The translations under genes were made by a program, and so were the position numbers. This document shows, in pieces, positions 4,175 through 30,529 of a stretch of DNA of 64,000 bases. Under the pieces are notes generated by a model that was not told where the DNA came from, made no database searches, and worked only from the letters and a program-made list of their open reading frames with translations. Where the stretch lies: positions 4,216,001 through 4,280,000 of the forward strand of contig JBHGNT010000012.1 of the NCBI GenBank assembly GCA_043228905.1, given 5' to 3'. Source of the DNA: Azolla caroliniana. Its lineage: Eukaryota > Plantae > Polypodiophyta. Positions within the stretch are counted from its first letter, which is position 1; every line of letters starts with the position of its first letter.

Positions 4175-4830
4175 TAGCCCCAGCCCTATCTTCGACTTGT
4201 TCTTCACGACCTGTTTTTCATCCTTCAATTGTTTGATCAGGCTCGCGGTTGCCACTTCTTGGCTTCTGTAGTGCATGAGTTGGGTCTGATAGGTCGTCTG
4301 AACTTTGTTCAGAGCCATTGTAGCACGCTCTGTTGCCTCTGAGTGCTGCCGGGTCAGCTCTACCTGTTCTTTCGCCGCTCCCGCCAGTTGTTTCGCTACT
4401 TCAACCCCCTTCGACTATTCTTCTACCAAGGTTGCCACGGTCCGGTTAACCTCATCCCGAAGTTCCTGTAACTTCTCTTGTTGTCGGTCAGTTTCGGTGA
4501 TCAATTTCTTGTGTTCCGCATCCAAGTGTTTGTGATCCCGGTGCAGCCGATCAAAGTCTTCCGTTTTCTGTTTCAATCGTTGGTTGATCAGACGGTGAGC
4601 ACGGTCTTCCCGGTCCTTTTGTTGCCGGAGTTCTTCCTTGAGTCGCTCGATCTCTACTTCCGCCGAGCGCTGAAGTTTGTCCTTTTCCTGCAGGAGTTTT
4701 TCTTTTTCTTCCTTCAGCCGGTCATATGCTTGATGACCTTTTCTCAAGCTGCCGAGGCTGTCGGCCATCTTCCTTTGTTCCTCCTCTGCCATTTTTTTCA
4801 ATTCTCGGTCCTTGGCTCATAAGGCTCTTA
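4175..4830 (-). pseudogene. Coiled-coil protein fragment (about 210 codons, internal stop at 4415), probably TE-derived
   Basis: ORF 4415..4801 is E/K/R/Q-rich with heptad periodicity. The frame continues past the stop (SKGVEVAKQLAGAAKEQVELTRQHSEATERATMALNKVQTTYQTQL...). Both ends are cut by other elements. Confidence 0.45.
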
Positions 4831-4980
4831 TGTAGCATTTATGTTCATCATTTTTTATAATTGACACATATTTCTCTATTTCCTTCTTAATCAAACATGT
4901 CACCCATCCTTGTGCTCTTCTTTGTCTTGGATTTTTCTCCCATATCAAAGAGTGTACATTATAGTTTCCTAATCTTTGAA
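4831..4980 (-). mobile_element. LINE ORF2 APE-endonuclease fragment (downstream half of the LINE split by the Sola2 insertion)
   Basis: Joining 30530 to 4980 across one TGAA copy gives the in-frame ...LLIETWEHDTQRIQRLGNYNVHSLIWEKNPRQRRAQGWVTCLIKKE, with APE-type ETW and GxVxxLIK motifs. Confidence 0.8.
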
Positions 4981-5269
4981 GGGTGAAAACATGCGAATGG
5001 AAACAATTAGCTATGCCCTTGACATAGGTAATTAGCTATGCAAAAAGCTACCAGTGATAAATAGTCATTTTTGCACTATGAATGAAAACATTAGAATGTT
5101 TTAATTATATAAATGAGCACCATAAATGGATATATTCACCATAAATTATACACCGAATTCCTAGGTCCATTATGCATGATCCATTGTCACATCACGTTGG
5201 CCATCACTTTGTGACTATTCAAGCTTAAATTATTGTCACTATTCCTAACCCTATTGAGTCCATTCCTCC

Positions 5270-5650
5270 ATTGCTGCCATTCTACACTCAGTTGTCGTCA
5301 CTATGCGGTCCAAGCATCATCTGCCATTGTTCGATCCGACGGAGTTCACTCCTCCATTGCCGTCATTCTATACTAAGTTACCGCCACAGTTCGGTCCAAG
5401 AATCATCTGCCACTATTCGCTCCTATTGAGTTCTGTTGCCACCATTCTACACTTAGTTGTTGCTACTATTCAGTTGTGGATTGTTGCTACTATTCGATCC
5501 GACGGAGTTCACTCTCCTCCATTTCCCCCATTCTACACTCAGTTGCCACCACTGTGCGTCCCAACCATCATCTGCCATTGTTCGATCTGACGGAGTTCAC
5601 TCCATTTCCACCATTCTACACTCAGTTGCCGCCATTGTTCGGTCCTGGAT
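5270..5650 (+). repeat. Degenerate tandem repeat (about 76-88 bp unit, about 5 copies) in the Sola2 left subterminal region
   Basis: ccattctacactcagttg or variants recur at about 5277, 5362, 5440, 5528 and 5612; ttcgatccgacggagttcactc recurs three times. Confidence 0.8.
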
Positions 5651-6346
5651 TGCAATGATTGTTCTGTCTGTTGATAATCTTGTGTATTGTTGTATATAAT
5701 CTTGTGTATTGCGGAATAATTTTTTGTATTGTTGTTGCCCATAGTCATCTTACCTCTTTCCCGACGGTGGTTGAGTATCCTTCACTCCGTTGCAACAAAC
5801 ATAAACTTACCAATGGTGGGATCACTCTTGTGAATCACCGGTTTGCATGTGGTTTAGTAACTACCTATGTGTCTTTCTTTGTGGAATTTTACTAATGAAT
5901 ATGTCAAGCCAAATGGAAGGGGAAGGAGGGTGTTTACCAATACCCCTCATGGATCATCAGGATAGGGATGACGCTATCAGGACACAACAAGCAATACGAA
6001 AGTATTGGGCAAAAAGAAGAAAGAAACATCATAGAGAGAAAGGTTGTAGACCAAGCACATCAGCAATGAAGACAAGAAGGTAGTACTTTATGGAATATTA
6101 AATGATCCATCGATAAAGGAGTTTGTTGATTGTGATGGTCTTAATGCAAACATAACATTTGTACTACTAAATAATCTTGAAACATAAAGGAGTTTTGTAT
6201 CCATAAGCAGGACAAAAGATGATCTTGTCTTAAAAAGGTCTAGTCTAATGATTTTACTTAATAGTCATGTTTACGATTTTAACATTAGTGTGCTATCTAA
6301 GGTAATTGGTGTTAGTACAAAAATTGTGTACAATACAATGAACCGG

Positions 6347-7024
6347 TGTCGCGTTGGTACACGCGTGCGTGGAGAACAAGGCGGGACCACTAGGGTCTTG
6401 GACCGAGGAATAGGTGAGAAGAGGGAGAGAGAGAGAGAGAGCGAGAGAGCGAGAGACGCTCACACACATATAGACAAAGAAGCACACGGGGACGCGGCCC
6501 AACAACACAGGAGACACGAGTTGAGAACGCTAGCTTATGTATATAAATATGTGTATGTATTTGTATGTATGCAGACGACTCGAACGGTTACAGCCGATCA
6601 GGTCGGCGAGATGGATGCCGGCACCTGATCACCCACGCACACAGGAGAGCAAGATGGAGATTCTGCCAAAAGCACACGGGCGTTGCACGGAGCAGGATCA
6701 GCCTCCTGAGAACCTATGCAAAAGAAAGCTATGGAGAACGACAGAGAAGAAGAGCTCGGTCCCAGTCCGACAGCACTTCGTCCCCTCTAGCGTGCGATAC
6801 CTTCTCTCCCCCGTCTCCCTCTCTTTTATAGCTCAAGGAGGGAGGCCGTTTCACCCGTTTACATCACATTAATTCTCTGTCCTTTCCCCTATAGAATATT
6901 GCTACCTAGGATTTGACCTTTGTGCCTACCTATCTACTATACAACAAGGGGCGTGCCCACGTCTAAGGGCCGGTTCACACACAGTATACACGGTTTGCGC
7001 CTGGGGACGGTTTTCTTCATGACA
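6347..7024 (-). repeat. 3' LTR of Gypsy-1 (678 bp)
   Basis: Near-identical to 12737-13449. PPT ggtgggggcgga (minus strand) lies immediately inside at 7025-7036. Confidence 0.97.
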
Positions 7025-7100
7025 TCCGCCCCCACCTAAACGCGCATCCACCGGTATGCGCCAAAATTGGGTTCCTACGGGAGAAAACCGATCCTTGCTT

Positions 7101-9005
7101 TTATTCCTCGTTTACCAGTTCATCCTCCGCCTCGGGCTGCTCGTCGTTGCTGTCCATGCCCCCTAGCTCTGGCTCACCGTCGTGTCGTTTCTTGAACGCT
7201 TTGATCCTCTTCCCCGCTACCGGTATCGCCATTCTCGTACCGTCGAGCTCCGCGAGATGGTACGTCCCATTGCCGTTGGCGCCTGTTACTACGTAAGGCC
7301 CGAACAACCTCCTCGCAAACTTCCGTGTGGCCCTGTGCTGATTGTCGAGGCTGCTGTCGTAGACTAGCACCCAGTCGCCTTCCTCGATCTTCCTTGGCCG
7401 GAGCCGGTGTGTTCGGTCGAACCAGGCTTTGTTCCTTATCCTCGCTACCCAAAGTTTCTCCACGGCTCGCTCTACGTCCTCCGGCCTCCGCTCGAGCTGT
7501 CGAATCCGCGCCGCCAACAGTTCCTCCCGGCTCATCTCATCCCTCCAATCCACCGTGGCCCACGAGGAGATCGTTCGCTTTGTTGGCATGATCGGCTTCT
7601 GTCCGAACATAAGCTCGGCCGGCATGAACCCGATTACTGAATTGTGCGTAGTCCGGTCCGCCCACAAGGCATAAGGTAGCAGCCGTGGCCAATTCCCGAC
7701 TTGGCCTCTGCACGCCCGTACTAGCGCTTTGACAATTGGCCCGTGTCCGCGCTCCACCTTCCCGTTCGCCTCTGGATTGTACGTTGTGGTGAGCCAAAGT
7801 TTGACTCCTAGCCGGTCGAACAGCTCTTCGGCCTCTTCTGCGTCCAACTCACCACGGTCAACCACGATCTTCCCTACGCACCCGTATCGGCATACCACGT
7901 CCTCAATCAAAAACCGGCATATGGCTGCAGTCGTCTTGTTCTGCAGGGCTCGGCCTTCAACCTGGTTTGTTAGATCCTCCCGAGCCAGCACCAGATATCG
8001 CATTTGTCCTACCTCCATTGGCATCGTCACCAAATCCACCATCCATTTGAAGTGGACGGTCGGAGGGTAGGTTGGGTGAAGCTCGTCCCGGTGTCGGATC
8101 ATGGAATGGACCTGGCAGCTTTCGCAAGTCGCCACGAACCGATGCACGTCCTGGTATAGTCCCAGCCACCAGTACTTCCCTTTTAGCTTTTCAAATGTGG
8201 CCCACGTTCCACGGTGTCCAGCCCAAGGACTATCGTGGTACGCCACCAGCAAATCCTCTTGTTCCTCCTTCTTCGCCACCACTCGGAGCGGCATGCCGTT
8301 CCTCTTCTTCGGGTGCTTCCATATGTACCCGTCCTGGAGAAAGAATCGGTAGGATTTCTTCTGAATCCGGTTGGCCTCGTCTGTTGTCCATGCCGCGTCC
8401 GGTGTCATTGTTTTCAGGAACCCGCCGATCTGCAGCCACTCTCCATCGTACTTGCTCTCGTCAAAATCATTAAGCGTTGGAGTGCATTCCCTGCCTGTTG
8501 TTACGTGAGCCGCCTTGAAGAAGTCCATGCCGACTTCCTCGTCCTCCGAAACCATGCCGCCCTTGTTTTCGAACCTCGCCCTTGAAAGCATGTCGGCCAT
8601 GGCATTGTCTTTCCCGGAAATGTGTCGTATTTCCGGATTCAGGGACTTGATGTACGCTATCCACCTGAGCATTGCCAGGTCCGGCGTCGCGCATCCGGAA
8701 ACCATGCCAAGAATTGGCAGGCAGTCCGTCTCGATAATTACCTCTGCCTCGATCAGGTAGTCTTTATCGGCCTTTACCGCCGATACGATACCCCAGAGCT
8801 CGCGTTTAACCTGGGTGTATCCTCGTTGTCGCTCGCTGAGGACCTTCGCGCCGAACCGGATCGGGAAACGCATGTCGTCCTTGTCCTCTTGGTTGACGAC
8901 CCATCCGATCCCAGTCGGACTCATGTCTATCGTTACGTAAATTGGAGTGTCCTTTCCGTAGACAGCCTTTCGGAGCGCCGGAGTTGCGGCAAGTGCTTCC
9001 TTCAT
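7101..9005 (-). CDS. pol: Gypsy pol 3' part: RNase H + integrase (HHCC zinc finger, rve core, GPY motif; no chromodomain)
   Basis: KRELWG, ETDC, NAMADMLSR, YHDSPWAGHRG..CESC, KWMVDL, YNPEANGKVERGH, FGPYVV. Confidence 0.93.
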   Translation of the reverse strand: MKEALAATPALRKAVYGKDTPIYVTIDMSPTGIGWVVNQEDKDDMRFPIRFGAKVLSERQRGYTQVKRELWGIVSAVKADKDYLIEAEVIIETDCLPILGMVSGCATPDLAMLRWIAYIKSLNPEIRHISGKDNAMADMLSRARFENKGGMVSEDEEVGMDFFKAAHVTTGRECTPTLNDFDESKYDGEWLQIGGFLKTMTPDAAWTTDEANRIQKKSYRFFLQDGYIWKHPKKRNGMPLRVVAKKEEQEDLLVAYHDSPWAGHRGTWATFEKLKGKYWWLGLYQDVHRFVATCESCQVHSMIRHRDELHPTYPPTVHFKWMVDLVTMPMEVGQMRYLVLAREDLTNQVEGRALQNKTTAAICRFLIEDVVCRYGCVGKIVVDRGELDAEEAEELFDRLGVKLWLTTTYNPEANGKVERGHGPIVKALVRACRGQVGNWPRLLPYALWADRTTHNSVIGFMPAELMFGQKPIMPTKRTISSWATVDWRDEMSREELLAARIRQLERRPEDVERAVEKLWVARIRNKAWFDRTHRLRPRKIEEGDWVLVYDSSLDNQHRATRKFARRLFGPYVVTGANGNGTYHLAELDGTRMAIPVAGKRIKAFKKRHDGEPELGGMDSNDEQPEAEDELVNEE

Positions 9006-9190
9006 CTTTCAGACAGACTCTGTATGCTCGTCTCTCCACTCGAATTTTCACCCCTTTTTCAGCAACCTGTATAACGGCTCCGCGACGTGAGAGTAATGCG
9101 GGATCCATATGTGGTAGAACACGCACGCTCCCAAGAACCTCCGAACCTCCGTGACTGAGCTACAGTCGTCCTTCATCGCAGAGATGGCTT

Positions 9191-10594
9191 CTACCTTAGC
9201 CGGAGACGGTTTCCGGCCGTACGACCCGCATGGTGTCCGACGACCATGATCTCTGATTGCTCGAAGGCCGATTTTCCCCCAGAGAAGGTGAGCCTCGCGC
9301 CCTCCAACCTCTGCAGCACCTTCTCGCAGTCATCGATGTGCGTCGCCACGAATTTCCGGCACCCGTCCGGTCCGATCGTCTCGTCCCTTTCCTCCATCGG
9401 GCATCCCTTGATCGGGACGTCATCCAGAAACGGCATGGTGATGTCCGGGATGCAATCCCTCAACACCTTGTTCATTGCGTTCACCATGTGAGCCACCGAG
9501 TTCGTCCCTCCTTGTGGTAGGGTACACATCCGTACTAGGCCGAGAGGAGTTCGCATTGTCGTGATGTCTCTGCTCTCTATGGCTAGCTGGAACTGATCGT
9601 ACCCCGAGTAGAGATCACCGACCGAGTAAATCGACCTTCCGGCGAAGGCCTCCGCGAACTCGTTTATTGTCGGTCCGATTCCTGCGTTTCGAATGGTCAC
9701 CTTGTTGACCGGCTGCAGGTCTTGAATAAAGCGCAGCGTGCCGTCCTTCTTCGGCACGGTAAACCACCGATTCGAGTATGGGGCACTCGACGGTTCGAGG
9801 ATTCCCATCTCGACCTTCTGCTTTAACAGCTCCATCATCTTCGGGATGTGAGCTCTGGATACTGGAATCGGTTTGAGACTCCACGGCACATGCGGTACCG
9901 TGAATATCACCATCGGTTCCACGACTATCGGGTCTACGCACCCGATCTCCTCCGGTGAGAATGCGAAAGCCTTCCCGTGCCTTCCGAGCATTCCTCGAAA
10001 ACAGTCCTCTTCCGCTAGCAGTAGGAAGCCGCCCCCACCGATTTTGAGCTCGCACAGCATTATGTCGGTGAACGTGTGTCCTATGCGGGCCGGATTTCGT
10101 AAACTCGGGTCCGACGCAACCCCCTTTATTCGCAACTCGCTACCCTCCGGCAAGGGAGCCGCGACTGGCCTCACCTTCCGGTCCACAGTCTTGTACCTCG
10201 TGTCCACCCGGGCCGTCCGATCCGACTCGAGCCCTCTACTGAAGTCCGCGATGACTTTGTACATCCTTTCCGAACATACTGGAATCGTCCGGTCCTCTTT
10301 AAGGACTCCTCCGACTACCTCTCACAGCTCCCCCAAGGTATCGTCGAAAGAGACCGCCTCCACGGCTCCGTTGATTTCCTCTTCAAGGCCACGGATACCA
10401 CATGCCGGAAATTGCTCCTCCACCCTTTTCTTCTTCCGGCCAACAACGTCAACTATCATATACCCTCCGTTGTCGGAGAACCAAAATTTCCTACTTATAG
10501 TACAGGTCTTCTTCACTATCGTACACTTGTGGGGTGTTCCCGGAGTGTCCGGACTATCGCGGCCCCACGCCTTGATAGCCCTCTCTAAAATTCC
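9191..10594 (-). pseudogene. pol: Gypsy pol 5' part: reverse transcriptase (premature stop at 10322, frameshift near 9230)
   Basis: SSAPYSNRWFTVPKKDGTLRFIQDLQPVN, DLYSGYDQ, LPQGGTNS, MPFLDD. Confidence 0.92.
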
Positions 10595-12693
10595 TCTCGT
10601 CTTTCGCCCCCGAGGGTCTCACGGTTCCGCTCATGGTTCGGTCTCACCGTCAAGAATTGGACCGAGTGACGCCCATCCTGGCTCTTGACCCTTGCATAGG
10701 CCGAGCCGTTGTCCAACACCTTGGTCTCCATCCGTGCTGCCATGATGTACGGTTCTCCTAGTATAACCGGATGTGAGGACGTCTCCTGCACGAAGAAGTG
10801 CTGGTCCATCTCGACATCACCAATCTTTACTCGTACATTCGGGCAGGCTCCATGCAGTTCTTCGGTGGCATGCGTCGTTGCATGTATTTTCCACCCGTGC
10901 TTGGTGTTGATCGTCCATTTCCCCTTCTTATAGAAGTCCATGGACATCAAATTGATTTCTGAACCGTGGTCCAATGCCACCACCGGTTCATGAACATCTC
11001 TGATCTTCACGGGGGTCTCCGTGGTCGCTCTCGCCCAGTGCGGCCTTGAATAGTGGCTCTCCGCCAACTCGTCTTCCAGCGCCATGTCCTCTATGTGCGT
11101 CGTCCGCACCTCCACCGGCTTCTCCGGTTCTATCTTCGTCGACATCCTCTTCCTCTTCACCAAGTCTACGATGGAGTCGTGGAACTCCTTCTTGGCGATC
11201 CCGAGCACTTCCCTCAGCGACAGTTCCACTTTGCTGTCGAGGATTCGTTCTTCCAGGACCTTTCACAGGTCCGTGGATCTTTCGATTTCTGTGCCCAGCC
11301 GGTACCCGCCCCTCTTGGGATTATCCTGGGCGCCAGTTACACCGGCCTCATTTCGTCTTTGCCCGAATCGAGTGTCATATCATTGTGAGGGCCCGGCCCC
11401 TCCGGTTTTCCCTACCCGCTTGTCCTCCACCAGAGCCTTGTAGTTTTGACAAGCAGCTTCGACGAAGCCCGTCTTTTCTTCCACCGGGTCACCTCCCGGA
11501 CCCGTTTTTCCGCGCGGTCTGCCTCTTCTTTCCTTAGTCGTGCGCCGGCGAGGCCTTCTAGCATCGTCGGCCAGAACCCGGCTTTGTTCGTCTTCGGGGC
11601 CTCGCCACCTCCAACCCGAATACCAGTTGACGCCGAGTAGTGGACGGTCTCCGCGTGACGAGCCGCCGCCTCCTCCATCAGCCTTTTCATACCCCCTCAC
11701 CCGACGTTCAGGTCTAGGGGCCTTCGGGTTTCGCTGGCGTGCACCTGACCATACCACAGGTACACCACGTTGCTTCTCATCGCCTCGGCGAAGTCCCCGC
11801 AGTCCTTCCGGATGTGGCCAACCGCGTCACACCACATGCACTTGTTTCCAGCCAGAGGTCGTCGGTCACGGCCCTGTTCACTACCGTCCCTCCATGCCTG
11901 CGCGATCTGGAGATCCTTTACCATCCGCGTCTTTTCCTCCAGAGCTGCTCCCCTGGACGAGCCCTTGACCATGCCGGTCGAAGCCGATCCGGTCTCGAGC
12001 CAATCTCGGGTCTCTTCCCTTCGTGTTGGTGGTGTTGGCTCGAGCTTCCTTGCTATGACAGAGCCCGCCCCTTTCGATCCTTTGTCAACCCATTCCCGTC
12101 GTTTGTCGAAACGACCACAGACCCTTTTCACCACGGCCCAGTCGGCCGTCAGCCCGTCATCAGTCTCCAATAGGAGGCCTACCTGCTCCCGATCCCGCTC
12201 ATCAACTAACTTAACAAACAATAGGACACGGCTTGTGTCCAGAACGGTCCGGTCAAGCACCGAGAGGCGCGAAGCGTTCCTCAAACTCCCGGAGGAGCAC
12301 CGACGCGTTCCTTCCTTTGTCGGGGGTCTCCACCCACTCCATGAAGTCCCGCTTCGAAAGTCGAAGCGCATCTTCAAGCCCGTATTTTTCGAGGAGCCGA
12401 CCTTCGAACTCCTCCCGGGTCCGGCTCTCGGCCCGTACCTCGAGCACCTCCGTATGGATACCCGGCATCGCCACTCGAGGGAATCCGGCTAGACGCCTGT
12501 CTTCCGGAATGTCCCTCATTACCATCTCAGCCCGGTAGGACGCCAAGTAGCTCGTGGCATCCTTCCCACTAAACCGGCCGATCGTACCGACAACCGCCTC
12601 GATAGCCCTATCAAGGGCGCCGGGGCCTTCGCGCGCACTCACTATACGGTCCACAGCCGAAGCCATGGCTTCTGCAAGGTCCGACCCCCTCAT
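10585..12693 (-). pseudogene. gag: Gypsy gag + aspartic protease (frameshifted)
   Basis: GRFSGKDATSYL in gag, zinc knuckle CMWCDAVGHIRKDC, protease LDHGSEINL...VILGEPY; ORF pieces 12253..12693, 11697..12377 and 10585..11229. Confidence 0.88.
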
Positions 12694-12714
12694 CTTCTAC
12701 TCCTCTACTGCCTC

Positions 12715-12732
12715 TTCACGTCGGGTTCACCA
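12715..12732 (-). promoter_or_regulatory. Primer-binding site complementary to the tRNA-Trp 3' end
   Basis: Minus strand TGGTGAACCCGACGTGAA, 4 nt from the 5' LTR. Matches the 3' end of plant cytosolic tRNA-Trp as I recall it (...TTCACGTCGGGTTCACCA). Confidence 0.85.
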
Positions 12733-12736
12733 AATA

Positions 12737-12810
12737 TGTCGCGTTGGTACGTGCGTGCGTGGAGAACAAGGCGGGACCACTAGGGTCTTGGACCGAGGAA
12801 TAGGTGAGAA

Positions 12811-12851
<41 letters not shown>

Positions 12852-13449
12852 CGAGAGACGCTCACACACGTATAGACAAAGAAGCGCACGGGGACGTGGC
12901 CCAACAACACAGGAGACACAAGTTGAGAACGCTAGCTTATGTATATAAATATGTGTATGTATTTGTATGTATGCAGATGACTCGAACGGTTACAGCCGAT
13001 CAGGTCGGCGAGATGGATGCCGGCACCTGATCACCCACGCACACAGGAGAGCAAGATGGAGATTCTGCCAAAAGCACACGGGCGTTGCACGGAGCAGGAT
13101 CAGCCTCCTGAGAACCTATGCAAAAGAAAGCTATGGAGAACGACAGAGAAGAAGAGCTCGGTCCCAGTCCGACAGCACTTCGTCCCCTCTAGCGTGCGAT
13201 ACCTTCTCTCCCCCGTCTCCCTCTCTTTTATAGCTCAAGGAGGGAGGCCGTTTCACCCTTTTACATCACATTAATTCTCTGTCCTTTCGGACAGAGATAC
13301 TCCTTGATTTCCCCTATAGAATATTGCTACCTAGGATTTGACCTTTGTGCCTACCTATCTACTATACAACAAGGGGTGTGCCCACGTGTAAGGGCCGGTT
13401 CACACACACTATACACGGTTTGCGCTTGGGGACGGTTTTCTTCACGACA
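12737..13449 (-). repeat. 5' LTR of Gypsy-1 (713 bp)
   Basis: Differs from the 3' LTR by 12 nt of extra GA repeat, a 23-bp segment, and about 13 substitutions counted by eye. Confidence 0.97.
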
Positions 13450-13699
13450 CCGGATAATTTCAAGTGGTGAAGGAATGAGTCTCCTAAAGCTAACAACAAG
13501 ATGTAAGCCAATGACACCCATAACATCAGAAATCAAGGATATAATCACCATATTTTGGACTAATGAGAGTAGGCTTTCACCCAATAAGAAGGATTTATGT
13601 AGGAAACGTGTTGGAAGGAGTTAATACGAGGAGCATCCCATTCATATTCGATGTACCTCATGTATTTACAATTATCTCAACTTTTGTTTTGAGTTTTGA

Positions 13700-14405
13700 G
13701 ATTAGTTAGTTAGCTAATTAACTACCTCAGAATATGACCATAGATAACTAACTACTGGTAATAGCTAAATAGTTAAATAGCTATTGCCAATAGCTAATTT
13801 AGTTATTATCAGTTAATTACCTAGCACAATAGCTAATTAGCTATCTCAGAATATGGCCATAGCTAACTAGCTACTAGTAATACCTAAATAACTATTGCCA
13901 ATAGAAAACTTAGCTATTATCAGTTAATTAGCTACAACAATAACTAATTAGCTATCTCAGAATATGACCATTGCTAACTAGCTACTAGTAATAGCTAAAT
14001 AGCGATTGCCAATAGCATTAGCTACCACAATAGTTAATTAGCTACCTCAAGATATGACCATAGCTACTCTTAATAGCTAATTAGCTACACTTAATAGCTA
14101 ACTAGCTATAACCGTCGCTAATTAGCTACAAAATATGACTACTAGTAATAGCTAATTAGCTACAAAATATGACTACTAGTAATAGCTAATTAGCTACATC
14201 AGAATATGATCATAGCTAATTAGTTATTGGAAATATCTAGTTAGCTATGTCAAGTGCTAATTAGCTACTGACCATAGCTAATTAGCTACTCTTCATAGCT
14301 ATTTAGCTACTATCAATAACTAATTAGTACTCTTATTAGCTAATTAGCTACAAGGAGAGTATGATCAGAGCTAATTAGCTACCACACTATGTCTAACTAG
14401 CTACA
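13700..14405. repeat. Array of palindromic AGCTAATTAGCT motifs inside a putative transposase intron
   Basis: Dozens of exact or degenerate (T)AGCTAATTAGCT(A) units separated by short spacers. Transposase coding resumes after ttattag|g at about 14468. Confidence 0.9.
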
Positions 14406-19400: not shown

Positions 19401-22350
19401 CCCTAGAGAAGGTGAGCCGCGCGCCTTCCAGCTTCTTTAGCACCTCCTCGCAGTCTCTGATGTGGTCCGAGACGAATTTTTGACACCCGTCTGGTCCGAC
19501 CGTTTCATCCTTATCCTCCACCGGACATCCCTTGATCGGAATGTCATCCAAGAATGGCATGGTGATGTCCGAGATGCAGTCCCTTAGCACCTTATTCATC
19601 ACATTCACCATGTGCGCTACCGAGTTTGTCCCTCCTTGCGAAAGCGTACACATCCGAACTAGGCCGAGAGGAGTCCGCATTGTCGTAATATCCCTGCTCT
19701 CTACGGCTAGTTGGAATTGGTCGTACCCCAAGTAAAGATCCCCGATCAAGTAAATCGACCTTCCGGCAAAGGCCTCCGTGAACTCGTCAATGGTCGGTCC
19801 GATTCCGGCGTTCTGAATGGTCACCTTGTTGACCAACTGCAGGTCCTGAATAAAGTGCAACGTGTCATTCTTCTTTGGCACAGTAAACCACTGATTTGAA
19901 TACGAGGCACTCGACGGCTCGAGGATGCCCATCTCCACCTTTTGCTTCAGCGGCTCCATCAACTTCGGGATGTGAGCTTTGGGTACTAGAATCGGCTTGA
20001 GATTCCACGGTACATGCGGTACTGTGAAGATAACCATTGGTTCAATGACCGTCGGGTCTACGCACCCGATCTCCTCCGGCGAGAATGCGAAGGCCTTCCC
20101 GTGCCTCCCGAGCATTCTCCGAAACCGTTCCTCCTCCGCCGGTAGTAGAAAGCCACCCCCAACGACCTTGAGCTCCCGTATTGTTATGTCGATGAACCGG
20201 TGTCCTATGCCGGCCGGATCTCGTTAACTTGGGTCCGACGCGACCCCTTTCATCCGTAACTCGTTGCCCTCCGACAAGGGTGCCACGACTGGCCTCACCT
20301 TCCGGTCTACAATCTTGTACCTTGTATCCACACGGGCCGTTCGATCCGACTCGACCCCTTTCCCGAAGTCGGCAATGACTTCGTACATCCGTTCCAAACT
20401 AACCGGAATCGTCCAGTCTTCACTGAGGCCTTCTTCGAGCACGTTCCTTAGATCTCCAAAGGTGTCGTCAAAAGAGACCGCCTCCACGGCACTGCCTATC
20501 ACTTCGTCGGGGCCTAGGAATCTGCATGCCCTAAGACGTTCCTCCGCCCACTTCTTCTCTCGGCCGCTAGTGCCGGTTATTGTACAACCTCCGTTGTCGG
20601 AAAACCAAAATTTCCTGTCTATAGTACAGGGTTTCCTTCCTATGCTACACGTGTGGGGTTTTTCCGAGGTGTCCGGACTACCGTGGCCCCACACCTTGAT
20701 AGCCCTCTCTAAAAATCCCCTCAGCTTTCGTCGCCGAGTGTCTCGCAATTGCGTTCGTGGTTCGGTCGCACCGTTAGATATTGGACGAAGTGTCGCCCAT
20801 CTTGGCTCTTCACGCGTGCATACGCCGAACCGTTATCCAACACCTTCGTCTCCATGCGTGCTGCCGTAATGTATGGTTCTCCGAGTATCACCGGGTGCAA
20901 GGATGTCTCCTGCACGAAGAAGTGCTAGTCAATCTCGACATCACCGATTTTCACGCATACATTTGGGCAAGCCCCGTGTAGCTCCTCTGTGGCGCATGTC
21001 GCCGCTCGTATTTTCCACTCGTGCTTGGATGGAACATCAGGTTGATCTCCGAACCGTGGTCTACCAATGCCACCACCGGCTCGTAGATGTCTCTGATCCG
21101 AACCGGTGTCTCCATAGTGGCTCTTTGCTAGTGCAGCTTCAAATAGTGGCTTTCCGCCAACTCGTCCTCCAGGCCATATCTTCCAGGTGCGTTCTTCGCA
21201 CCTACAACGACTTCTCCAGCTCCGGCTCCGTCGAAAACCGTTTCTGCTTCACCAAGTCCATGATGGAGTCGTGGAACTCCTTCTTGGCGATCTCGAGCAC
21301 TTCCCTTAACGACAGGTCCACCTTGTTATCGAGGATTTGTTCCTCTGAAACTTTTCGTAGATCCGTCGTCCTTTCTATCTCGGTGCTTAGTCGGTAACCG
21401 GCCTTCTTTGTTTTGTCCGGTGCACCAGTGGTATCGGCGTCATTCTGCGTCGACCCGAACCGGGTCTCGTACCATTGCGAGGGTCCGGCCCCTCCGGCTT
21501 TTCCCGCACGTTTGTCCTCTACTAGAACCTCGTAGTTCTGGCACTCAGCTTCCACGAAGCCAGTCTTTTCCTCGACCGGGTCATCCCACCCGATGACCTC
21601 CCGGACCTGCCTTACCACGCGGTCTGCTTCCTCCTTCCTCAGCCGCACACCAGCGAGGCCTTCTAGCACCAACGGCCAGAACCCAGGGTCCTTCGTCCTA
21701 CGGCCTTCGTCACTCCCGACCCGGATTCCTGCCGACGCCGAGTAGTGGATGGTCTCTACATGGCGCGCCGCCGCTTCTTCCATCCGCTGCTTCATTCCTC
21801 CACGTCCAATGTTCGACTCCAGGGCTCTCCGGGTCTCGCTAGAATGCACTCGCTTGTTCCACAGGTACACCACATTAGCCCTGAGCGCTTCCGCGAAGTC
21901 CCTGCATTCCTTCCAAATGTGACCAACTACGTCACACCACAAGCATTGATGCCCAACCGGAGGCCTTCGATCGCTAGGCTGCTCGCCGTCGTCCCTCCTT
22001 GCCTGTGCAATCTGGAGGTCTTGTACCATCTACGTCAGCTCTTCCACAACCGCTCCTCCAGACGGGCCTTTGACCACACTGGTCGATGTCGGGCCTATCT
22101 CGAGCCAATCTCGGGTCTCCTCCCTTCACGCCGGCGGGGGTCCCTCAAGCTTTCTTGCCACAACAGATCCCGCCCCCGATGAGCCCTTGTCGCCGCACTC
22201 ATGCCGTTTGTCGAAACGGCCATAGACTCTTTTCATCACGGCTCAGTCGGTCGTCATGACGTCGTTTGTCTCCAGCAGGAGACCCACTTGCTCCCAATCC
22301 CGCACGTCCACAGCCTTTACGAACAACAGAACCTTGCTCCCAATCCCGCA
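16474..22350 (-). mobile_element. 5'-truncated Ty3/Gypsy element (Gypsy-2), same lineage as Gypsy-1
   Basis: 3' LTR 16474-17145 (TGTC...GACA) with adjacent PPT gtgggggcaga. Broken IN, RH, RT (MPFLDD), PR and gag ORFs at 17218-22340, homologous to Gypsy-1. 5' gag, PBS and 5' LTR are missing. Confidence 0.93.
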
Positions 22351-22754
22351 TTATCCTTTTGCTCACAATTTTCCTGTGTCCACTGACCCTTGAAATTTTG
22401 TCGCCACTTCAGGAAGAATCTTTCTACACCCTTCCACACATATGTACGTGGTTTTTCACTCCAAATAAACAAATCAAAGTATTGCACAACCCACACTAGA
22501 AATTGATTCGCGTCCCTCCTTGGCTGCGTATATCACACACTCATCAGGACTTTATCAAGATCCAAGATCAAGGCTCTTCTATCTTCTAATGGTTTAGGTT
22601 TCCATAATTGTAACTGACCTTGTGTTACACCAAGTATTGGTAGCATACGATCAATTTCAATCAACTCAGGTTCTGTCGACCCAATTGGTATCCTTTTGTT
22701 GAGTGACAAGCTCAACATTGAGTGCGTAATACGATGCGTAAACCGGAAGGCCAT
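22351..22754 (-). pseudogene. FCP1/NIF-like (CTD-phosphatase family) HAD domain fragment, Sola2 cargo
   Basis: Reading through one TGA: RALILDLDKVLMSV*YTQPRRDANQFLVWVVQYFDLFIWSEKPRTYVWKGVERFFLKWRQNFKGQWTQENC. This shows the DLDxxL motif I, R..FL, IWS and W.Q..C features of NIF domains. The C-terminus is lost at the Gypsy-2 junction. Confidence 0.72.
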
Positions 22755-23835
22755 CAGTATGGTATTCCTCGTAAGGAATAATTTTGGGAGTTACTGTAGC
22801 AAGCTCATTTATGAGCATTCAAGTACTGTCAGTACTTGTGTCAGCCCGATAGTCAGGGCTTGTATATAAGGTGCTCACTAAGCACGAAGTATGTACAGAA
22901 CGGAGAACTATTATTTTGAAATAGATTTGAGTTGTATGCTCTGTCTCTGTCTCTCCCTCTCTCCATCTCCATCTCTGCGTTTTCAGTGTTTTACCGAATT
23001 GTCTTATTCTCCCAAACTGTGTACTCTGTGTCTTACGCACACGCTTCCACACAACGTATTCTTTCACACCTTTTCCTCTTCAAACCCTTGGTCGACTGTG
23101 TCATTGTGTTTGCTTCACCTTGTCTTGTTGTTGTGCAGTCATTGGGCTTGGCTTCACACTATTTCTCTCTTGTATAGTTGATTGTGTCATCAGTCCTAGC
23201 ATTACCTTTGTGCATGTAGATAAGTCTCCTCTAGTCAATATCAGCCCACTAGTATCACATGTTGCATCTACCTGCAAAATCAGATCATTTGTGCAACATG
23301 CTTGATCTACTTGCGTGACTAGATCATTTGTGTCAGTTGCTAAATCTACTTTCAAGATGGGGCCCTCTAAACACGTAGCAACATCAATAGTTTCCACATT
23401 GTCATCGGCCTTATGAGCAATAGATTCAAACCCTTTAGACTCTGCAACATCAGAAAACACCAACATATTCGCACTCACAAAGTAGCTAACAGTCTCACAA
23501 AACAACATAATGAACATGAAATATTCTGCAACAAAATAATAATATTATTTTAATCTCCATCATAGAGTTCCATTACATAATGTGGATCAAGCAACAACCA
23601 ATCTGAGGTTTTACTTGTCCAAATAGATCATAGAAAATCTTCATAATTTTCTAGGAAAATAGCTAACAATCATATCCCACTAATCAGTAATTAGCAGTAA
23701 TTAGCTCCAATTCAAGAGCCCCTTGACCGAGTAATTGGTCTTGTCCCCAATTGTGGCCCCTTCTTCAGCCTTTTTCTAGCCGGTTTCCCATTTAGCCTTG
23801 CTTCTTTCACCCATTGCGCAAGTGTGTCCTCCTCC

Positions 23836-26800
23836 AACATGTTCGCGTTCACAAGTGGAAGGATCGCGCCCAAATGGAAGGATAAGGAATATTCCATATG
23901 ATTTTAGGGCTTTTTTGGTCATTTCACAAAACACCTTGATACCAGTATCACATGTTCTCAAAAACTTGATGAAAAAGCTAAAATTTTCACCATTTGGTAG
24001 ATTTGAAAAATGCCAAATTTTGGCCAAATACGAAAAGTGAAAGGAGAAATTACAACTAGTAGTATTTTAGATCCTAACGAAATCATAAGCGAAAGATTTC
24101 AAAACAATCAACTTTTTCATTTCATTTGATAAAATGTTGTCTAAATTTCTTATATATGGTTGCACAAAAAATACATTTAGGAGTTATTTGCATCACTATC
24201 ATCATTCCTTTCATGAGAATCACTACTATAGCTAATATACAATTGTGACTCTTCCTCCTCATTTTCAAATGTACCAATCAAATCATTGTCTTCACTAAAT
24301 GGTGTCTCCAATTGTGTGCACTAAATCTTGTTCGCCTTCAATCTGAGATATCTTCTAGTCTTGGTAATATCTTTTTTATTATGTCTATTGTTGTCGTCCT
24401 TAAACATCCAACTTTTGTCAGTGTAAAGTCATACACAATGATATCCACCTCACTAATGTCAATGATAGATGTATTACAAAAGTTTAATGCATCACCACGT
24501 CCAAAACTTTACCAATGTAGTATTGGTGCCCTAGGTCATGGCCATCTACATGTGTAGCTAGCTATTAATATCCCCACCTTGAGTTCTTGCAAGTTTCCTT
24601 GTCACCTGAGTTATGTTCGTGTTTTCATCCTTAGCTCCACATAAATGTTTCTATGTTGTAGATGAACCAAACTATGAAGATCAACATTAAGTGCTTTGAA
24701 GTGGTGATTAAGAACCCTGAGAATATTTTATAGAGCACGTAAATTGCATTTGCAAGGTTTAATTACCATCAACACAATTATTAATGGCTTTTTGTTAATC
24801 AATGAAGCACATGTTCACCATAAGGTTTCTTGTTATGCAACATACTTCTTTGCAATATGATGCATCTTTTTCTCTTGTAAAAATAGAGATTTTAGTACAA
24901 TTCGAGTTCATGTAACCCTAAACCTCTTTTATTTGAAAAAAAAGAAGATTTCTAAACATGAACTCCATACATTGTATCCAATTGATGTAAAAAACAAAGT
25001 TTTGATCATAATTACATACAATGTATCAAATTCATGTTCAAAGTTTTTTTCTATAATTTTAAAAAATAAAAAAATTGAGCTTGAGTTGATGAAAAATCCA
25101 GTTTTTTCACCGCAATTCAATACAATGCATAGAGTTCATGTTTAAAGTAATTTTTTAAAATTTTTTTAAATTGTTTTCAAATTTGTTTCAAATTTTTTGT
25201 TTTTTGGAAAAAAAATATTTTAACATGAATTCAATACATCGACTGGTAATGAAAACTATAGTTTTTTCATCACTTCGAAAAAAAAAAATTAAAAAAACAA
25301 AAAGACCCAAAATAAATAGAAAAAATAAAAAATAAAAAATAATACTTTAAACGTGAACTCGATACATTGTATCGAGTTCATCTTGAAAACTCTGTTTTTA
25401 AACATGAACTCGAATGTATCGAGTTCGTGTTGAAAATATGACTTTTCGACACGAACTCGATACATTCGTGTTAAAAACCCTATTTTTAAACACGAACTCG
25501 ATACATTGTATCGAGTTCGTGTTGAAAAACTCAGCTTTTTTATGTGAACTCGATGCAATGTATCGAGTTTGTGTTTAAAACATTTAAACACGAACTCGAT
25601 ACATTGTATCAAATTCATGTTGAAAAGTCAACTTTTCAACACGAATAGAGTTTTCAAGACCTAGTTGGTGTCAAAAAGCTGACATTTTGGCATGAATTCG
25701 ATACAATGTATCGAGTTCATGTTTAAAGTTTTTTTTCTATTTATTTTGGGTCTTTTTGGTTTTCTTTTTCTTTTAAGTTGAAGTGATAAAAAGACTAGAT
25801 TTTTCATTACAAGTCAATACAATGTATTGAATTCATGTTTAAAGTTTTTTTTCCAAATATATAAAAAATAAAAAATAAAATCACTGTAAACATGAACTAG
25901 GTACATTGTATTGAATTGTGATGAAAAATCTGGTCTTTTCATCAAGTCAAGTTCGATTTTTTTATTTTTTTATTTTTTAAAATTCGGGAAAAAAATCTTT
26001 GAACATGAATTTGATACGTTGTATGGAATTGTGATGAAAACTCTATTTTTTACATCAACTCAATACAATGTATGCAGTTCATGTTTAGAAATCTTCTTTT
26101 TTTTCAAATAAAAGAGGTTTAGGGTTTACATGAACTCGAATTGTACTAAAATCTCTGTTTTGACAAGAGTAAAAGATGCATATCGATGTTGTAAAGAAGT
26201 ATGTTGCACAACAAGATACCTTATGGTCAACATGTGCTTCCTTGATTAACAAAAATCCATTAATAATTGTGTTGATCGTAATTGAACCTTGTAAATGTCA
26301 TTTACTTCACAAATTTTGTAGGTGAGCTCTCAAAATGAAGAAGAGGAGAGCATTGTGGATTCCTTGATAATTATGTGATATGTTCAAATTGATATATAAA
26401 TTAACTTATATCTAAGTTTGGTAGTTTATGAATATCATCTACATTTTAGGAGTTATGGATTTATCAAAATTGTTTATGAATATTGTATACCTTTCTTGAG
26501 TTGTGAATTTATGGATGTTAATGAGCACTAAATTTATAGATGAGGGCATTAAGGATTACAATGTTACCTCTTATACTTCAAGTCTAACAATAGATGTAAC
26601 TTCCACTTCCGTACATCTTCTCGAGATGGTGAAACCATTAATCTTAACTTCTGCCTTAAGTTAACCATTGTGATTTTCTTTAAGTTAACTACATTTCATA
26701 TATGCAAACCATCAACGTTTAAACATTTATTGAAAAACTATACAATTTTAGAAATGATCATTTTGAAACTTGTTAAATCTCAAAAAATTAACAAATTTTA

Positions 26801-26924
26801 CATGTTATTTAAATCATGTGATACTGGTGTATCAAGTTTCTGAAAATCACCTAAAATCACAAGATTATAAAAGGAATCTATAAGTGGAATGCACGATCCT
26901 TCCACTTGTGAACGCGAACGTGTT
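23836..26924. mobile_element. Unclassified non-autonomous TIR DNA transposon (3.09 kb), 4-bp TSD CTCC
   Basis: TIR aacaYgttcgcgttcacaagtggaaggatcgYgc at both ends (about 34 bp). Subterminal inverted motif ccagtatcacatg. CTCC at 23832-23835 and 26925-26928. Removal joins ORFs 26865..27179 and 23712..23897 in frame (AMERLSE|EDTLAQW). Confidence 0.88.
24739..26305. mobile_element. 1.57-kb foldback palindrome element
   Basis: 24739-25250 is a close reverse complement of about 25800-26305. The core is made of repeated AACTCGATACA(T/A)TGTATCGAGTT palindromes. No TSD was found. Confidence 0.85.
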
Positions 26925-27399
26925 CTCCGACAACCTTTCCATCGCCTCAACAACGGCTTGCACGTCAGCCATGTCTTGTGCTAGCTTTTCAAGTACAATG
27001 GGATCTAGTGGAACATCATCAACAGTTGGGCTCAGTGGGGTTGAATCAAGGTTTTGGGATTCGAAGAAATGTTGCATGAAGTGTTCAAAAATATTGTTGT
27101 TATGAACCTCAAATTTACATGTTGTTTCCAATATTTCATGGCTTTTCACAACATTGCTTAATTCAATACAATCTTCCAAAAGAATAGGGTGGAGCTGATC
27201 TCAAGGAGATGTGATAGCAAGACTCTTACTTTCACCCACGTTGCTAGCTATCTCCTCATCGATTGCAATGTCATCAGCACCGAACACCTCATGCAACCTC
27301 CTTAATCCATGAGATTCTACAACAACATGTCAACTAATTAGCGGCTTCTCTTGTGTTTTTCTATCACCTTAGCTGACAACTAAACATGGTAGCAGCTAC

Positions 27400-28118
27400 T
27401 CTTGATACTGCTCGATACTACTACATCCTAGCTAATTAGCTACATCTTAGCTAATTAGTTATTCTACTTAAGTATGGTAGTAGCTAATTAGCTACCACTT
27501 AGCTAATTAGTTGCATTGTAGCTAATTAGTTGCATTGTAGCTAATTAGTTGTTGGACTATAGGCTGGAAGTAGCTAATTAGTTATTCTTCTTAACTACGG
27601 CAGTAGCTAATTAGCTACCAATCTTGATATGCTTAGCTAATTAGCTGCTAGACTATAGATTGATCGTAGCTAATTAGCTACATCTTAGCTAATTAGTTAT
27701 TCTACTCAAGTGGTAGTAGCTAATTAGCTTCTAGACTATAGGCTGGCAGTAGCTAATTAGCTACATCTTAGCTAATTAGCTATTCTTCTTAACTATTGTA
27801 GTAGCTAATTAGCTACCACTCTTGATATTGCTTAGCTAATTAGCTAAGATGTAGCTAATTAGTTGTTGGACTATAGATTGGAAATAGCTAATAACTACAT
27901 CTTAGCTAATTAGCTATTCAACTTAAGCATGGTAGTAGCTAATTAGCTACCACTTAGTTAATTAGCTACATTGGCTGCTAGGTTATAGGCTAGCAATAGC
28001 TAATTGGCTACATCTTAGCTAATTAGCTAGTCTTCTTAACTATGGCAGTAGTTAATTAGCTACCACTCTTGATAATGCTTAGCTAATTAGCTACATCTTG
28101 GCTAATTAGTTATTGTAC
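27400..28118. repeat. Second AGCTAATTAGCT palindrome array, in a putative cargo-gene intron (about 28135-27317)
   Basis: Dozens of TAGCTAATTAGCTA units with higher-order spacers (catctt, ccactcttgat, gactataggctgg). Confidence 0.9.
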
Positions 28119-29500
28119 TTAAGCAACAATTTTACCTATCAGTTTTCTCCACTCATCTGGAAGAGTTGTATTGCAATCCCCCAAACAGACTACAGCAATG
28201 CGACAGGCATATTGAAAACAAACGATATGGTATGTGTGTTCGCATGGTCGTAGGTATACCAACAAAGTAGCAGTTTTGTCCTCTATGCCTAAGCCGCAAG
28301 CAATGCAACGTGCTTGAACAGTCAATATATCGTTGCTTGGTTCTTCTTCGTTTGGTATGGGAGCAAGAACGTTGAGGTCCGATTCTTGTCTGCTCCTTAC
28401 CATCCCCTCTACAAAATGTAGCAGTTTCTTAAAGGCAGCCAATTACCTATTCTTGACAGGAGTATTGTTCTTAGAACACAGTTGAGAAATTTACCAATAA
28501 ATCATTCGTTAATGAGGAAGATATAACAACAAGAAACAATAATCATTAACTTACTTGGGAGGTTCTCCAAATTGTAATCAGCGACAGTATTTACACCTAG
28601 AAGGTCCAGGTTCATTGAAAGAAGTTGGATCTTTGTCTGTAGTTGTATTTTCTGTTGGGGATCTAGCGGCCCCTCAATTTCGAGCTCATGTTGAGTAACC
28701 TGTTCTAGATAATGCCTCACTAAGCACATTTTCATGTACAAGGTATATATAACATGTTACATACTAGCAAAAAAATAGCAACCTGAATCTTATTTCTGAT
28801 TGTTGTCACTGCCAAAGTGACTTTGCTTTTCATTGCAGCAGCCAATGTTGCTTTCTCTAAATCAGTCTTTGTTGCCTCCAATGTCTCACAGGCTTCATGG
28901 ACATTTTTCAGAATATAGCTAATCAATGTCTCACCTGTATCATCAACATTGGTTTTCATTGTATTTCGGTGTGGTATAAACTTGCGGGTTTGTTGGGAGT
29001 GGGCAGTTGATGATGTGGGCAATTGCATCATCAACTGCCATTCTCCAGAATCTTGCCATTTTTTGTTGCAAGCTCCCCATCTTCCGGCATCGTTCTACCG
29101 ATGCCTCACCATAAATAGCCCAAGCTACCTTATACATTTCAGGGTCCGTTGCTTCCTTCGTTGTTTTGCAATACTCATATGTAAAAGCTCTGGTGAATGC
29201 AATGGACAGCTTGTTGTTGACCGGGATCTATTGATGTACTTTCTGGTGGAGCCTCATGCAGTCGTCATACAACTCCAGTCATACATGCTTGAGCTTCGCC
29301 TTGCCTTTCACTCTGGGCACTTATAGACTGACAACCAATCTACATCACTAATCAATTTGTTTGTTAAAACAACAGGGTCAATACCCTCTAGCAACAGACC
29401 ATATATGTTGTTAAAGTCCTCCTTTGCCTTGCAAAACTTTACAAAGTTTAGCACTCTAGCATATGGAGGAACGAGTCATCTGGATTAAAATATCAATACA
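28119..29500 (-). pseudogene. Multi-exon cargo gene remnant with RING-H2-like zinc finger
   Basis: CIACGLG...PCEHTYHIVC...CLGDC in ORF 28119..28442. Upstream coding pieces at 28502-28741 and 28790-29330 (ELYDDCMRLHQKVHQ*IPVNNKLSIAFTRAFTYE...KVAWAIYGE). Exon limits are approximate. Confidence 0.68.
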
Positions 29501-29669
29501 TGTTACCTCTGCTCTACTGGGACATGTATATTTAGAGCCATAATTGGTAGGGAAGAATCAAAAATAAAAAATCAGCCACATTCACCCAAATCCTAAATCA
29601 AGTTTGGGGGAAGTTTGCAAACACACAGCCATTGAAGTCAGAAATGTGAATTGGTACAAAATTCCACAT

Positions 29670-29960
29670 TAAATCAGAAATCAACCGCTTAAAAAATCAG
29701 AAACCCTATTCAAAAACTTTAATCAGAAACCCTAATCAGACATCAACCACTTAAGGAAATTAGAAACCCTAATCTAAAATATGTATGAAATCAACCCTAA
29801 TCATAATTGGTAGGGAAGAATAAAAAATAATTAGAAATCAACCGCTTAAAAAATCAAAAACCTTAATAAGAAACCCTACTCAGAAATCAATCGCTTAAGG
29901 AAATCAGAAACCCTAATCTAAAATATGTATGAAATCAACCCTAATCATAACTTTTGTCAA
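29670..29960 (+). repeat. Short modular repeats (aatcagaaaccctaat / aaatcaaccgcttaa) in the Sola2 right subterminal region
   Basis: Repeated cagaaaccct and aatcaaccgcttaa; about 60-bp duplication ...gaaaccctaatctaaaatatgtatgaaatcaaccctaatcataa at about 29750 and 29895. Confidence 0.75.
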
Positions 29961-30529
29961 TCAGAAACACACATGCTGCTACACCCCGATCTTCGAGACA
30001 TCCTTGTTTGGGACTCCAACAACTTCGCCCTAATTGTTTTTCATAAAACATGAACAGGCAACAAAGTTACGGTTATTAGAAAGTAAAAAAAAAAAGATTT
30101 TTTAATGTGTCACTAATACATACTTGGACAAGGATCGAACTGATGTTGTGTTGTAGCTCTAAAGGTGCAATGTCAATATTAGAGTTTTTGTGCTGCTACA
30201 AGAGTTTCGTCTGCGTTCGTGCTCAGAGTACTCCATTTGTTTGGATTTCGAAGTCAAACTCACCCTAAACTAGAATTTGGTGACATTCAAGTCGAGTTTA
30301 GATGGGCACTGTTCCCCAAGTTCCACTACATCAAAAACCAAAGTTCAAAATTTTGAGCATTCTCATAAATTAAATGACATGTATTTAACTAATAAAACAT
30401 AAAATTTCGTAAATGATCCTCATGATTTGCCCACAAAAAACTTAGCTAAACAAATAGCTAAATGGCTATAGCCATTTTAATAGCTAATTAGCTATAATTG
30501 TGTTTCCACTCACATGCTTTTACCCTGAA

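Follow-up and report, generated by a model that had tools for sequence, protein, structure and literature searches.

Transposons of the Sola2 type end in 5'-GRG...CYC-3'. The group is said to have been placed within the Sola superfamily by Bao et al. 2009 and to be held in Repbase. Sola elements are marked by a transposase with three catalytic aspartates (DDD) and by 4-bp target-site duplications (TSDs), and they measure 2-9 kb, with some above 15 kb (PMC10741241). In dictyostelids, Sola2 ends read GAG...CTC and are flanked by 4-bp duplications, and chimeric Sola2-Fanzor elements (DFa-1/2/3 and PPa-1/4/5) have been described there (Bao and Jurka 2013, PMC3627910). Pfam is without Sola models (PMC5751038). 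The structure of Sola elements in plants is essentially undescribed, and in fern repeat tables Sola appears as a RepeatMasker class only. Here we analyze a stretch of 64,000 nucleotides from Azolla caroliniana (assembly GCA_043228905.1, contig JBHGNT010000012.1, positions 4,216,001 to 4,280,000, forward strand), referred to below as the window. With a probability of about 0.85, we take the region at 4977-30529 (25.5 kb including TSDs) to be an old Sola2-type transposon of the cut-and-paste kind, a single and now inactivated copy of an autonomous element. It would belong to a family of fern-like plants with two convergent genes, one for the transposase and one for an accessory cofactor.

Ends of the element and its copies in other plants

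From one terminal inverted repeat (TIR) to the other, the host element occupies 4981-30525. Its borders and left arm contain the following features:

4977-4980, no strand: left TSD, TGAA, identical to 30526-30529
4981-5005, plus strand: left TIR, starting GGGTGAAAAC; the same terminus is present on 66 contigs elsewhere
5256-5645, no strand: tandem repeat of 86-bp units (4.6 copies, 69% matches) in the part of the left arm that separates the TIR from the start of the transposase
30501-30525, minus strand: right TIR, the reverse complement of a 25-mer starting GGGTAAAAGC
30526-30529, no strand: right TSD, TGAA, a perfect match to the left TSD

Both TIRs begin with GGG and they agree at 21/25 positions. 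A degenerate 25-mer covering the two has 2 sites in 64 kb, with 0 expected from shuffles. An earlier inspection of the letters without database searches (the sequence-only reading) had described 25-bp imperfect TIRs with a GGG start and a perfect TGAA duplication, and both descriptions hold. It had also reported an in-frame LINE (long interspersed nuclear element) endonuclease once the element is removed. The joining of the frame is confirmed: deletion of 4981-30529 makes a minus-strand open reading frame (ORF) in the flanks continuous and in frame, with ~50 and 53 residues around the junction. The identity of this ORF is less firm, since Pfam and PDB sequence searches with the two flank pieces, each searched separately, gave 0 matches. 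WNCNG / LLIETW-type motifs, recognized by eye, make the start of an APE-type LINE endonuclease plausible. Local BLASTN with the joined flanks found no uninterrupted paralogue of the insertion site in the window or the fetched loci.

To the left of the presumed endonuclease fragment (window 3000-4800, minus strand), the frame turns into a long Glu/Lys-rich, coiled-coil-like sequence. This sequence has no Pfam match and is not a reverse transcriptase; therefore, the LINE is at best a short fragment.

Scanning metagenome contigs for the TIR pattern yielded 66 contigs with the same terminus from one ENA series (ERZ10343xx; L007-L072). These contigs share the window's other repeats at ~65-86% identity and therefore stem from a related plant. 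They carry 61 distinct flanks, and their sequences diverge exactly at the first G of GGG. The interiors fall into left-end and right-end types that match the two ends of the window element. At the 61 insertion sites, the four duplicated positions are ~75-84% A/T, position -6 is enriched in G and position -5 in T; this flank composition hints at a weak target preference. On five contigs the right TIR is joined to exons of the accessory gene, at 68-78% nucleotide identity to window 28127-30525. MITEs (miniature inverted-repeat transposable elements) of ~297 bp, made of the right end joined to the left end, were also found; one has a perfect TTAT duplication (L024) and three match at 3/4 positions.

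The sequence-only reading had proposed searching for further copies that link these TIRs with transposase and cargo, and for TIR pairs with other 4-bp duplications. Both exist in Adiantum nelumboides. L075 is a complete copy of 10,950 bp with a perfect GTAT duplication. L006 measures 12,108 bp and has perfect 22-bp TIRs starting GGGTCTAAGCATGT, with flanks (GAAA/GAAG) that match at 3/4 positions. Both copies carry the transposase and the cargo between homologous TIRs. L004, from another assembly, has the same right end at a different site. The first 14 TIR bases of the Adiantum copies fit GGGTnnAAGCATGT, as does the right TIR of the window, while the left TIR of the window differs at two positions. 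Element ends were not found at the liverwort locus L003. In all, the 4-bp duplication is perfect in three cases, with TGAA for the window, GTAT for L075 and TTAT for the L024 MITE, and four further pairs match at 3/4 positions (L006 and three MITEs).

Nested insertions and original length

Three younger insertions lie within the host element:

6347-13453, minus strand: insertion 1, a Ty3/Gypsy-order long terminal repeat (LTR) retrotransposon with CCGG flanks
16474-22350, minus strand: insertion 2, a retrotransposon of Gypsy order and a relative of insertion 1, one end missing
23836-26928, no strand: insertion 3, a non-autonomous TIR element with many internal inverted repeats and CTCC on both sides

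Insertion 1 encodes reverse transcriptase, RNase H and integrase in Ty3/Gypsy order, and its LTRs are ~93% identical over 717 columns. Insertion 2 is 72-81% identical to it. Insertion 3 (3.1 kb) has 31-bp TIRs (AACAYGTTCGCGTTCACAAGTGGAAGGATCG) and a foldback-rich interior of nested inverted repeats; a copy of its sequence, 84% identical, is present on a metagenome contig (L047, 1459-1839). Excising insertion 1 restores the transposase frame, and excising insertion 3 restores that of the accessory gene. Sequence pieces were joined only within scripts, to check reading frames and to search the joined insertion-site flanks by local BLASTN, and exons were searched singly.

The three insertions account for 16.1 kb, or 63% of the span, and leave 9,468 bp of host element, in line with the at least about 9.5 kb given by the sequence-only reading. 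That reading had also assumed a further loss through a deletion at the second Gypsy element. The loss is real: insertion 2 and a deletion removed part of the host element, in that a phosphatase-like (NIF-like) exon of the accessory gene ends at 22353 and the complete relatives measure 10,950 and 12,108 bp. The native size of the element is ~11-12 kb, which is not exceptional for Sola. The word "giant", used for it before, is too strong, given that Sola elements above 15 kb have been reported (PMC10741241).

Transposase and probable assignment to Sola2

The transposase is encoded on the plus strand in three pieces:

6248-6346, plus strand: N-terminal exon piece with a helix-turn-helix-like LSKVIGVS...VYN stretch (by eye), interrupted by insertion 1; resembles the N-terminal region of P0015 by eye
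13454-13660, plus strand: continuation of the N-terminal exon, in frame with 6248-6346, with a stop at 13622-13624; homologous to L001, L003 and L006
14401-16169, plus strand: main coding region, with the DDD core and a C-terminal Cys-rich region

An exhaustive HMMER search with a 234-residue piece of the transposase yielded 1,570 homologues. Among them are sequences from the liverwort Calypogeia fissa, a Klebsormidium transcriptome (P0075), a nemertean, ferns such as Adiantum nelumboides and many animals. Family alignments and a motif scan agree on the conservation of DFAENY, SDG..QFK and HGK...D; the first two are separated by 83-90 residues and the last two by 37-43. In the window, DFAENY and HGKG..D are present as previously listed. 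The middle motif, for which SDG had been given, reads WSNG..SQFK, so that the second catalytic Asp is replaced by Asn. The main coding region is further damaged by stops at 14554-14556 and 15289-15291 and by a frameshift near 15650-15740. Judged by these in-frame stops, the frameshift and WSNG in place of the relatives' WSDG, the window copy is a dead relic that is unable to move on its own.

In an AlphaFold model of the core (pLDDT 85, pTM 0.82), the three Asp occupy the canonical positions: strand 1, the end of strand 4 and the first part of the helix that follows strand 5. All Foldseek matches to this model were RNase H-like nucleases or transposases, with weak scores. By this model, the family's transposase carries its DDD triad on a fold like that of RNase H. 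Pfam gave no transposase match for any ORF of the element in the window.

Two Sola2 transposases printed in the supplement of PMC3627910 (Sola2_DFa-2 and Sola2_PPa-1) contain DFKEN, WSDGAKHFK and HGKSDVD. By our own count the motifs of Sola2_DFa-2 are spaced by 87 and 43 residues, against 83-90 and 37-43 in the fern family, a comparison made by eye. The ends of the window element, the 66 external ends, L006, L075 and L004 are all of the form GGG...CCC and agree with the GRG type. GRG ends and a 4-bp duplication had been given as marks of Sola2; both are present in the window element and recur in the external termini and in the Adiantum copies. Describing the element as a new variant of a known superfamily, of Sola2 type, appears essentially right.

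Some metazoan relatives (animal homologues P0059 and P0089) carry a C-terminal OTU cysteine-protease domain, and one has a weak, sub-threshold SIR2-like match. Because these domains are fused to the transposase of metazoan relatives, accessory functions differ by lineage in the family.

A conserved accessory gene convergent with the transposase

The remaining coding pieces of the host element are on the minus strand:

22353-22790, minus strand: NIF-like (FCP/SCP-type HAD phosphatase) exon remnant with DLDKV, cut at 22353; PF03031 E = 3e-4, 20.9 bits; matches the NIF ORF of L005
23104-23834, minus strand: linker pieces, one acidic and repetitive, the other basic with KRLKKGP; compared by eye with Adiantum gene models
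26931-27329, minus strand: acidic exon, in frame with 23715-23834 after removal of insertion 3
28122-28442, minus strand: RING-like zinc-finger exon, CxxC...CxHxxHxxC...CxxxC
28505-29475, minus strand: N-terminal conserved domain and coiled coil, broken into three frames; intact 229-residue ORF in L028

Convergent minus-strand pieces follow the transposase in a fixed order in L001, L004, L005, L006 and L073-L075. From the transposase side outward, the order is a NIF-like HAD phosphatase, a Cys/His RING-like finger and a conserved domain of ~130 residues with a coiled coil (CC). In the window, read from the outer side, the N-terminal domain and coiled coil (29475-28505) are followed by the RING-like exon (28442-28122), the linker (27329-23104, with insertion 3 inside) and the NIF remnant (22790-22353). 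The gene models of Adiantum join RING to NIF and CC to NIF; therefore, the pieces form one multi-exon gene. On L028, a contig with 92x coverage that carries the right TIR and accessory exons, the 229-residue exon is intact.

The PF03031 scores of the L004 ORF (32.9 bits), L005 (29.9 bits) and P0163 (31.9 bits) exceed the gathering cut-off of 21.8 bits, and the remnant in the window, at 20.9 bits, is slightly under it. Within the phosphatase motif DxDx(T/V), the window reads DLDKV and keeps both Asp. The Cys/His pattern of the RING-like finger is conserved in the window, L001, L004 and the Adiantum models, with Pfam RING families reaching only E = 0.06-0.15 and staying under their cut-offs. The RING and NIF gene model P0163 had 0 matches when PDB sequences were searched. 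The N-terminal domain has no match in Pfam or PDB, and its AlphaFold model, which is poor (pLDDT 64), has no Foldseek match.

In Adiantum nelumboides, the annotated NIF paralogues number at least 6, and those of the N-terminal and coiled-coil part at least 22, all of them listed as "hypothetical protein". The cargo is recognizable across lineages whose transposases are only 42-55% identical, with the CC and RING parts at 28-37% identity. Across this deep split, the ratio of nonsynonymous to synonymous substitution rates (dN/dS) of the CC domain is ~0.18. The cargo is one conserved family gene and not an assortment of captured genes. The sequence-only reading had proposed a multi-gene family with a transposase and one or more convergent accessory genes, and the syntenic cargo in relatives and its many copies in Adiantum bear this out.

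Palindromic motifs near the ends and inside both genes

A short palindrome and its half-site recur at four places in the host element:

5005-5040, no strand: left subterminal half-sites AATTAGCTA at 5005 and 5030, forming a small hairpin-like palindrome; conserved in the left-type ends and MITEs of the metagenome contigs
13690-14410, no strand: array A, clustered copies of the 14-bp palindrome TAGCTAATTAGCTA and of its variants, between transposase exons
27334-28160, no strand: array B, a second TAGCTAATTAGCTA cluster, inside the accessory gene
30443-30494, no strand: right subterminal palindrome sites, with a full site at 30481-30494

The palindrome occurs 19 times in the window, each time within the element. 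All copies of the half-site (29/29) are found in host-element segments, either next to the TIRs or in the two arrays, with 0 in the nested insertions or outside the element. Relatives carry lineage-specific palindromes of 12-14 bp instead: CCACTTGCAAGTGG in Adiantum-type copies, CTATGTACATAG in L001 and AGTACTAGTACT in the liverwort L003. Their layout is shared, with one array directly upstream of the main transposase exon and a second within the accessory gene. Arrays stand at corresponding positions in L006 and L073-L075, and the liverwort locus has the transposase and one array. The MITEs retain only the sites adjacent to the ends. We infer that the palindrome is a putative binding site of an element-encoded protein, most likely a transposase dimer, that co-evolves with it.

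Two other explanations of the arrays were rejected. As separate MITE insertions, they would not fit their corresponding positions in every Adiantum copy and a motif common to the termini. As the true ends of a smaller element, they would not fit the transposase exons outside array A.

In Adiantum, array A is a near-perfect inverted repeat of ~320 bp whose arms are 90-95% complementary (L006, 7102-7886; also in the arrays of L073-L075). If transcribed, it could yield a long hairpin RNA.

Neighboring sequences in the window

Outside the element, gag, integrase and RVT_2 domains mark a Ty1/Copia retrotransposon at 58469-62788. Just upstream of it, a minus-strand fragment (57036-57815) has a retroviral SH3-like domain. 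A minus-strand ORF at 40837-41703 contains a cyclophilin-type peptidyl-prolyl isomerase domain (E = 5e-18) and is possibly the sole ordinary host gene seen in the window.

Proposed mechanism and alternative explanations

In the interpretation we favor, the element would have inserted at a TGAA site within an older ORF, possibly a LINE fragment, and two Gypsy-order retrotransposons and one small TIR element would have inserted into it later. A transposase dimer may bind the palindrome, with the helix-turn-helix-like N-terminal region making the contact. The sites adjacent to the TIRs would then place the catalytic core for cleavage at the GGG ends and for integration with a stagger of 4 bp, and the internal arrays could be extra binding sites that regulate or assist transposition. 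The accessory protein would be a cofactor that the element encodes and that selection maintains: it would either help transposition, as the second ORFs of PIF/Harbinger or CACTA do, or be directed at the host. In the latter case it may, for instance, act on RNA polymerase II, IV or V at the phosphorylated C-terminal domain, or on other silencing components, and the fast-evolving palindrome arrays would be docking sites that bring the accessory protein, or else the transposase, to members of its own family. We regard this last proposal as doubtful. If true, it would amount to a sequence-specific system of self-recognition or anti-silencing, comparable to VANC of VANDAL elements but assembled from other components.

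Several observations weigh against an autonomous Sola2-type element with a selected cofactor. The phosphatase motif was found in 6/9 Adiantum-type copies checked, and each of these has DLNNV and lacks the second Asp. Between close Adiantum copies, the dN/dS of the NIF and RING exons is 0.7-1.3, and therefore no recent constraint on the cargo has been demonstrated. NIF has no match in L001 or in the liverwort relative L003, and L003 matches no accessory piece. Together with the broken cargo of the window copy, these results would fit a real element whose minus-strand cargo is a passively captured host gene of the Pack-MULE type, without a role in the life cycle and kept via a founder copy. We consider this unlikely, because the same order and orientation are found in lineages with 42-55% transposase identity, in which CC and RING are still recognizable and the CC dN/dS is low. 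Passive capture also does not account well for the intact 229-residue exon in a high-copy collapsed contig (L028), nor for a conserved multi-exon structure that encloses a family-specific array. Ratios near 1 between young Adiantum copies are expected from decay after insertion, and one transposase segment likewise has a dN/dS of 1.20.

The group assignment and the outline of the element were weighed in the same way. The Sola2 call draws on motifs, spacing, ends and duplication length, with the Sola2 proteins compared by eye, and a profile search toward the dictyostelid Sola2 proteins returned plant-like sequences only. The missing Pfam match and the distant RNase H-like folds found by Foldseek would likewise suit a transposase of another Sola subgroup or of an unnamed DDD superfamily, similar to Sola2 only in short catalytic motifs. 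This is very unlikely in our view, since the agreement with two published Sola2 transposases covers all three motif contexts and both spacings, the 4-bp TSDs are those of Sola and Sola2-Fanzor, the G-purine-G ends match the dictyostelid 5'-GAG...CTC-3', and Pfam lacks Sola models in any case. As to the outline, the 66 contigs belong to ENA metagenome assemblies and not to the window's own genome (repeats ~65-86% identical), and several MITE pairs, on low-coverage contigs, have no matching duplications, which we attribute to chimeric assembly and age. The window itself has a single copy, of which 63% is nested insertions. A chance pairing of TIRs and TGAA, or a composite of unrelated sequences bounded by them, nevertheless has a negligible probability and is already contradicted by the evidence: shuffles predict 0 such sites, 66 external termini share the boundary base, complete Adiantum copies show the same gene order between homologous TIRs, the half-site is common only to the ends and the internal host segments, and reading frames are restored across the nested insertions.

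Relation to described elements

The definition of the family by exact ends, MITEs, a conserved second gene and putatively co-evolving site arrays can serve as a template for annotators, because without one, pipelines turn the cargo exons into dozens of host genes labeled "hypothetical protein", as has happened in Adiantum nelumboides. With a 297-bp MITE, a 14-bp site and two proteins, it also offers a tractable system for asking how Sola ends are recognized and why a phosphatase-like protein travels with the transposase.

The fern family shares with the Sola2 group a DDD transposase that has DF.EN, SDG...FK and HGK...D at the same spacing and no Pfam model, as well as a 4-bp TSD, short TIRs starting with G-purine-G and a size within the range reported for Sola. 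It differs in its convergent accessory gene, composed of an N-terminal domain with a coiled coil, a RING-like and a NIF-like part, and in its two internal, lineage-specific palindrome arrays. Its hosts are ferns, with distant kin in liverworts, a Klebsormidium transcriptome (P0075) and many animals.

Also close are the Sola2-Fanzor elements, which are 10-15 kb long, carry a second protein gene besides the transposase and have 4-bp TSDs, short TIRs and 5'-GAG...CTC-3' ends (PMC3627910). However, their second gene encodes Fanzor1, a TnpB-like nuclease, whereas the fern gene is RING-like and NIF-like and has no similarity to Fanzor. Their TSDs are strongly AT-rich (AWWT), compared with a moderate A/T bias in the fern family.

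Among two-gene plant TIR transposons of other superfamilies, PIF/Harbinger elements encode a Myb-like ORF1 next to the transposase, CACTA elements encode TnpA and TnpD, and VANDAL MULEs encode the anti-silencing protein VANC, which has co-evolving arrays of short motifs. CACTA elements also have subterminal repeats bound by TnpA, and VANC has its own target motifs. As in these systems, the fern family has a second element-encoded protein that is conserved together with the transposase, and its short repeated motifs, which differ between related lineages, recall the TnpA repeats and the VANC motifs. By contrast, its transposase superfamily and the domains of its second protein are unrelated to theirs. 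Its arrays consist of perfect palindromes and are located 1.6-3 kb from the ends and inside genes. In the searchable literature, no description of the accessory gene or of the palindrome arrays was found. Dictyostelids are already known to have multi-gene Sola2 elements; what appears to be new in the fern family is the cargo gene and the lineage-specific palindrome arrays.

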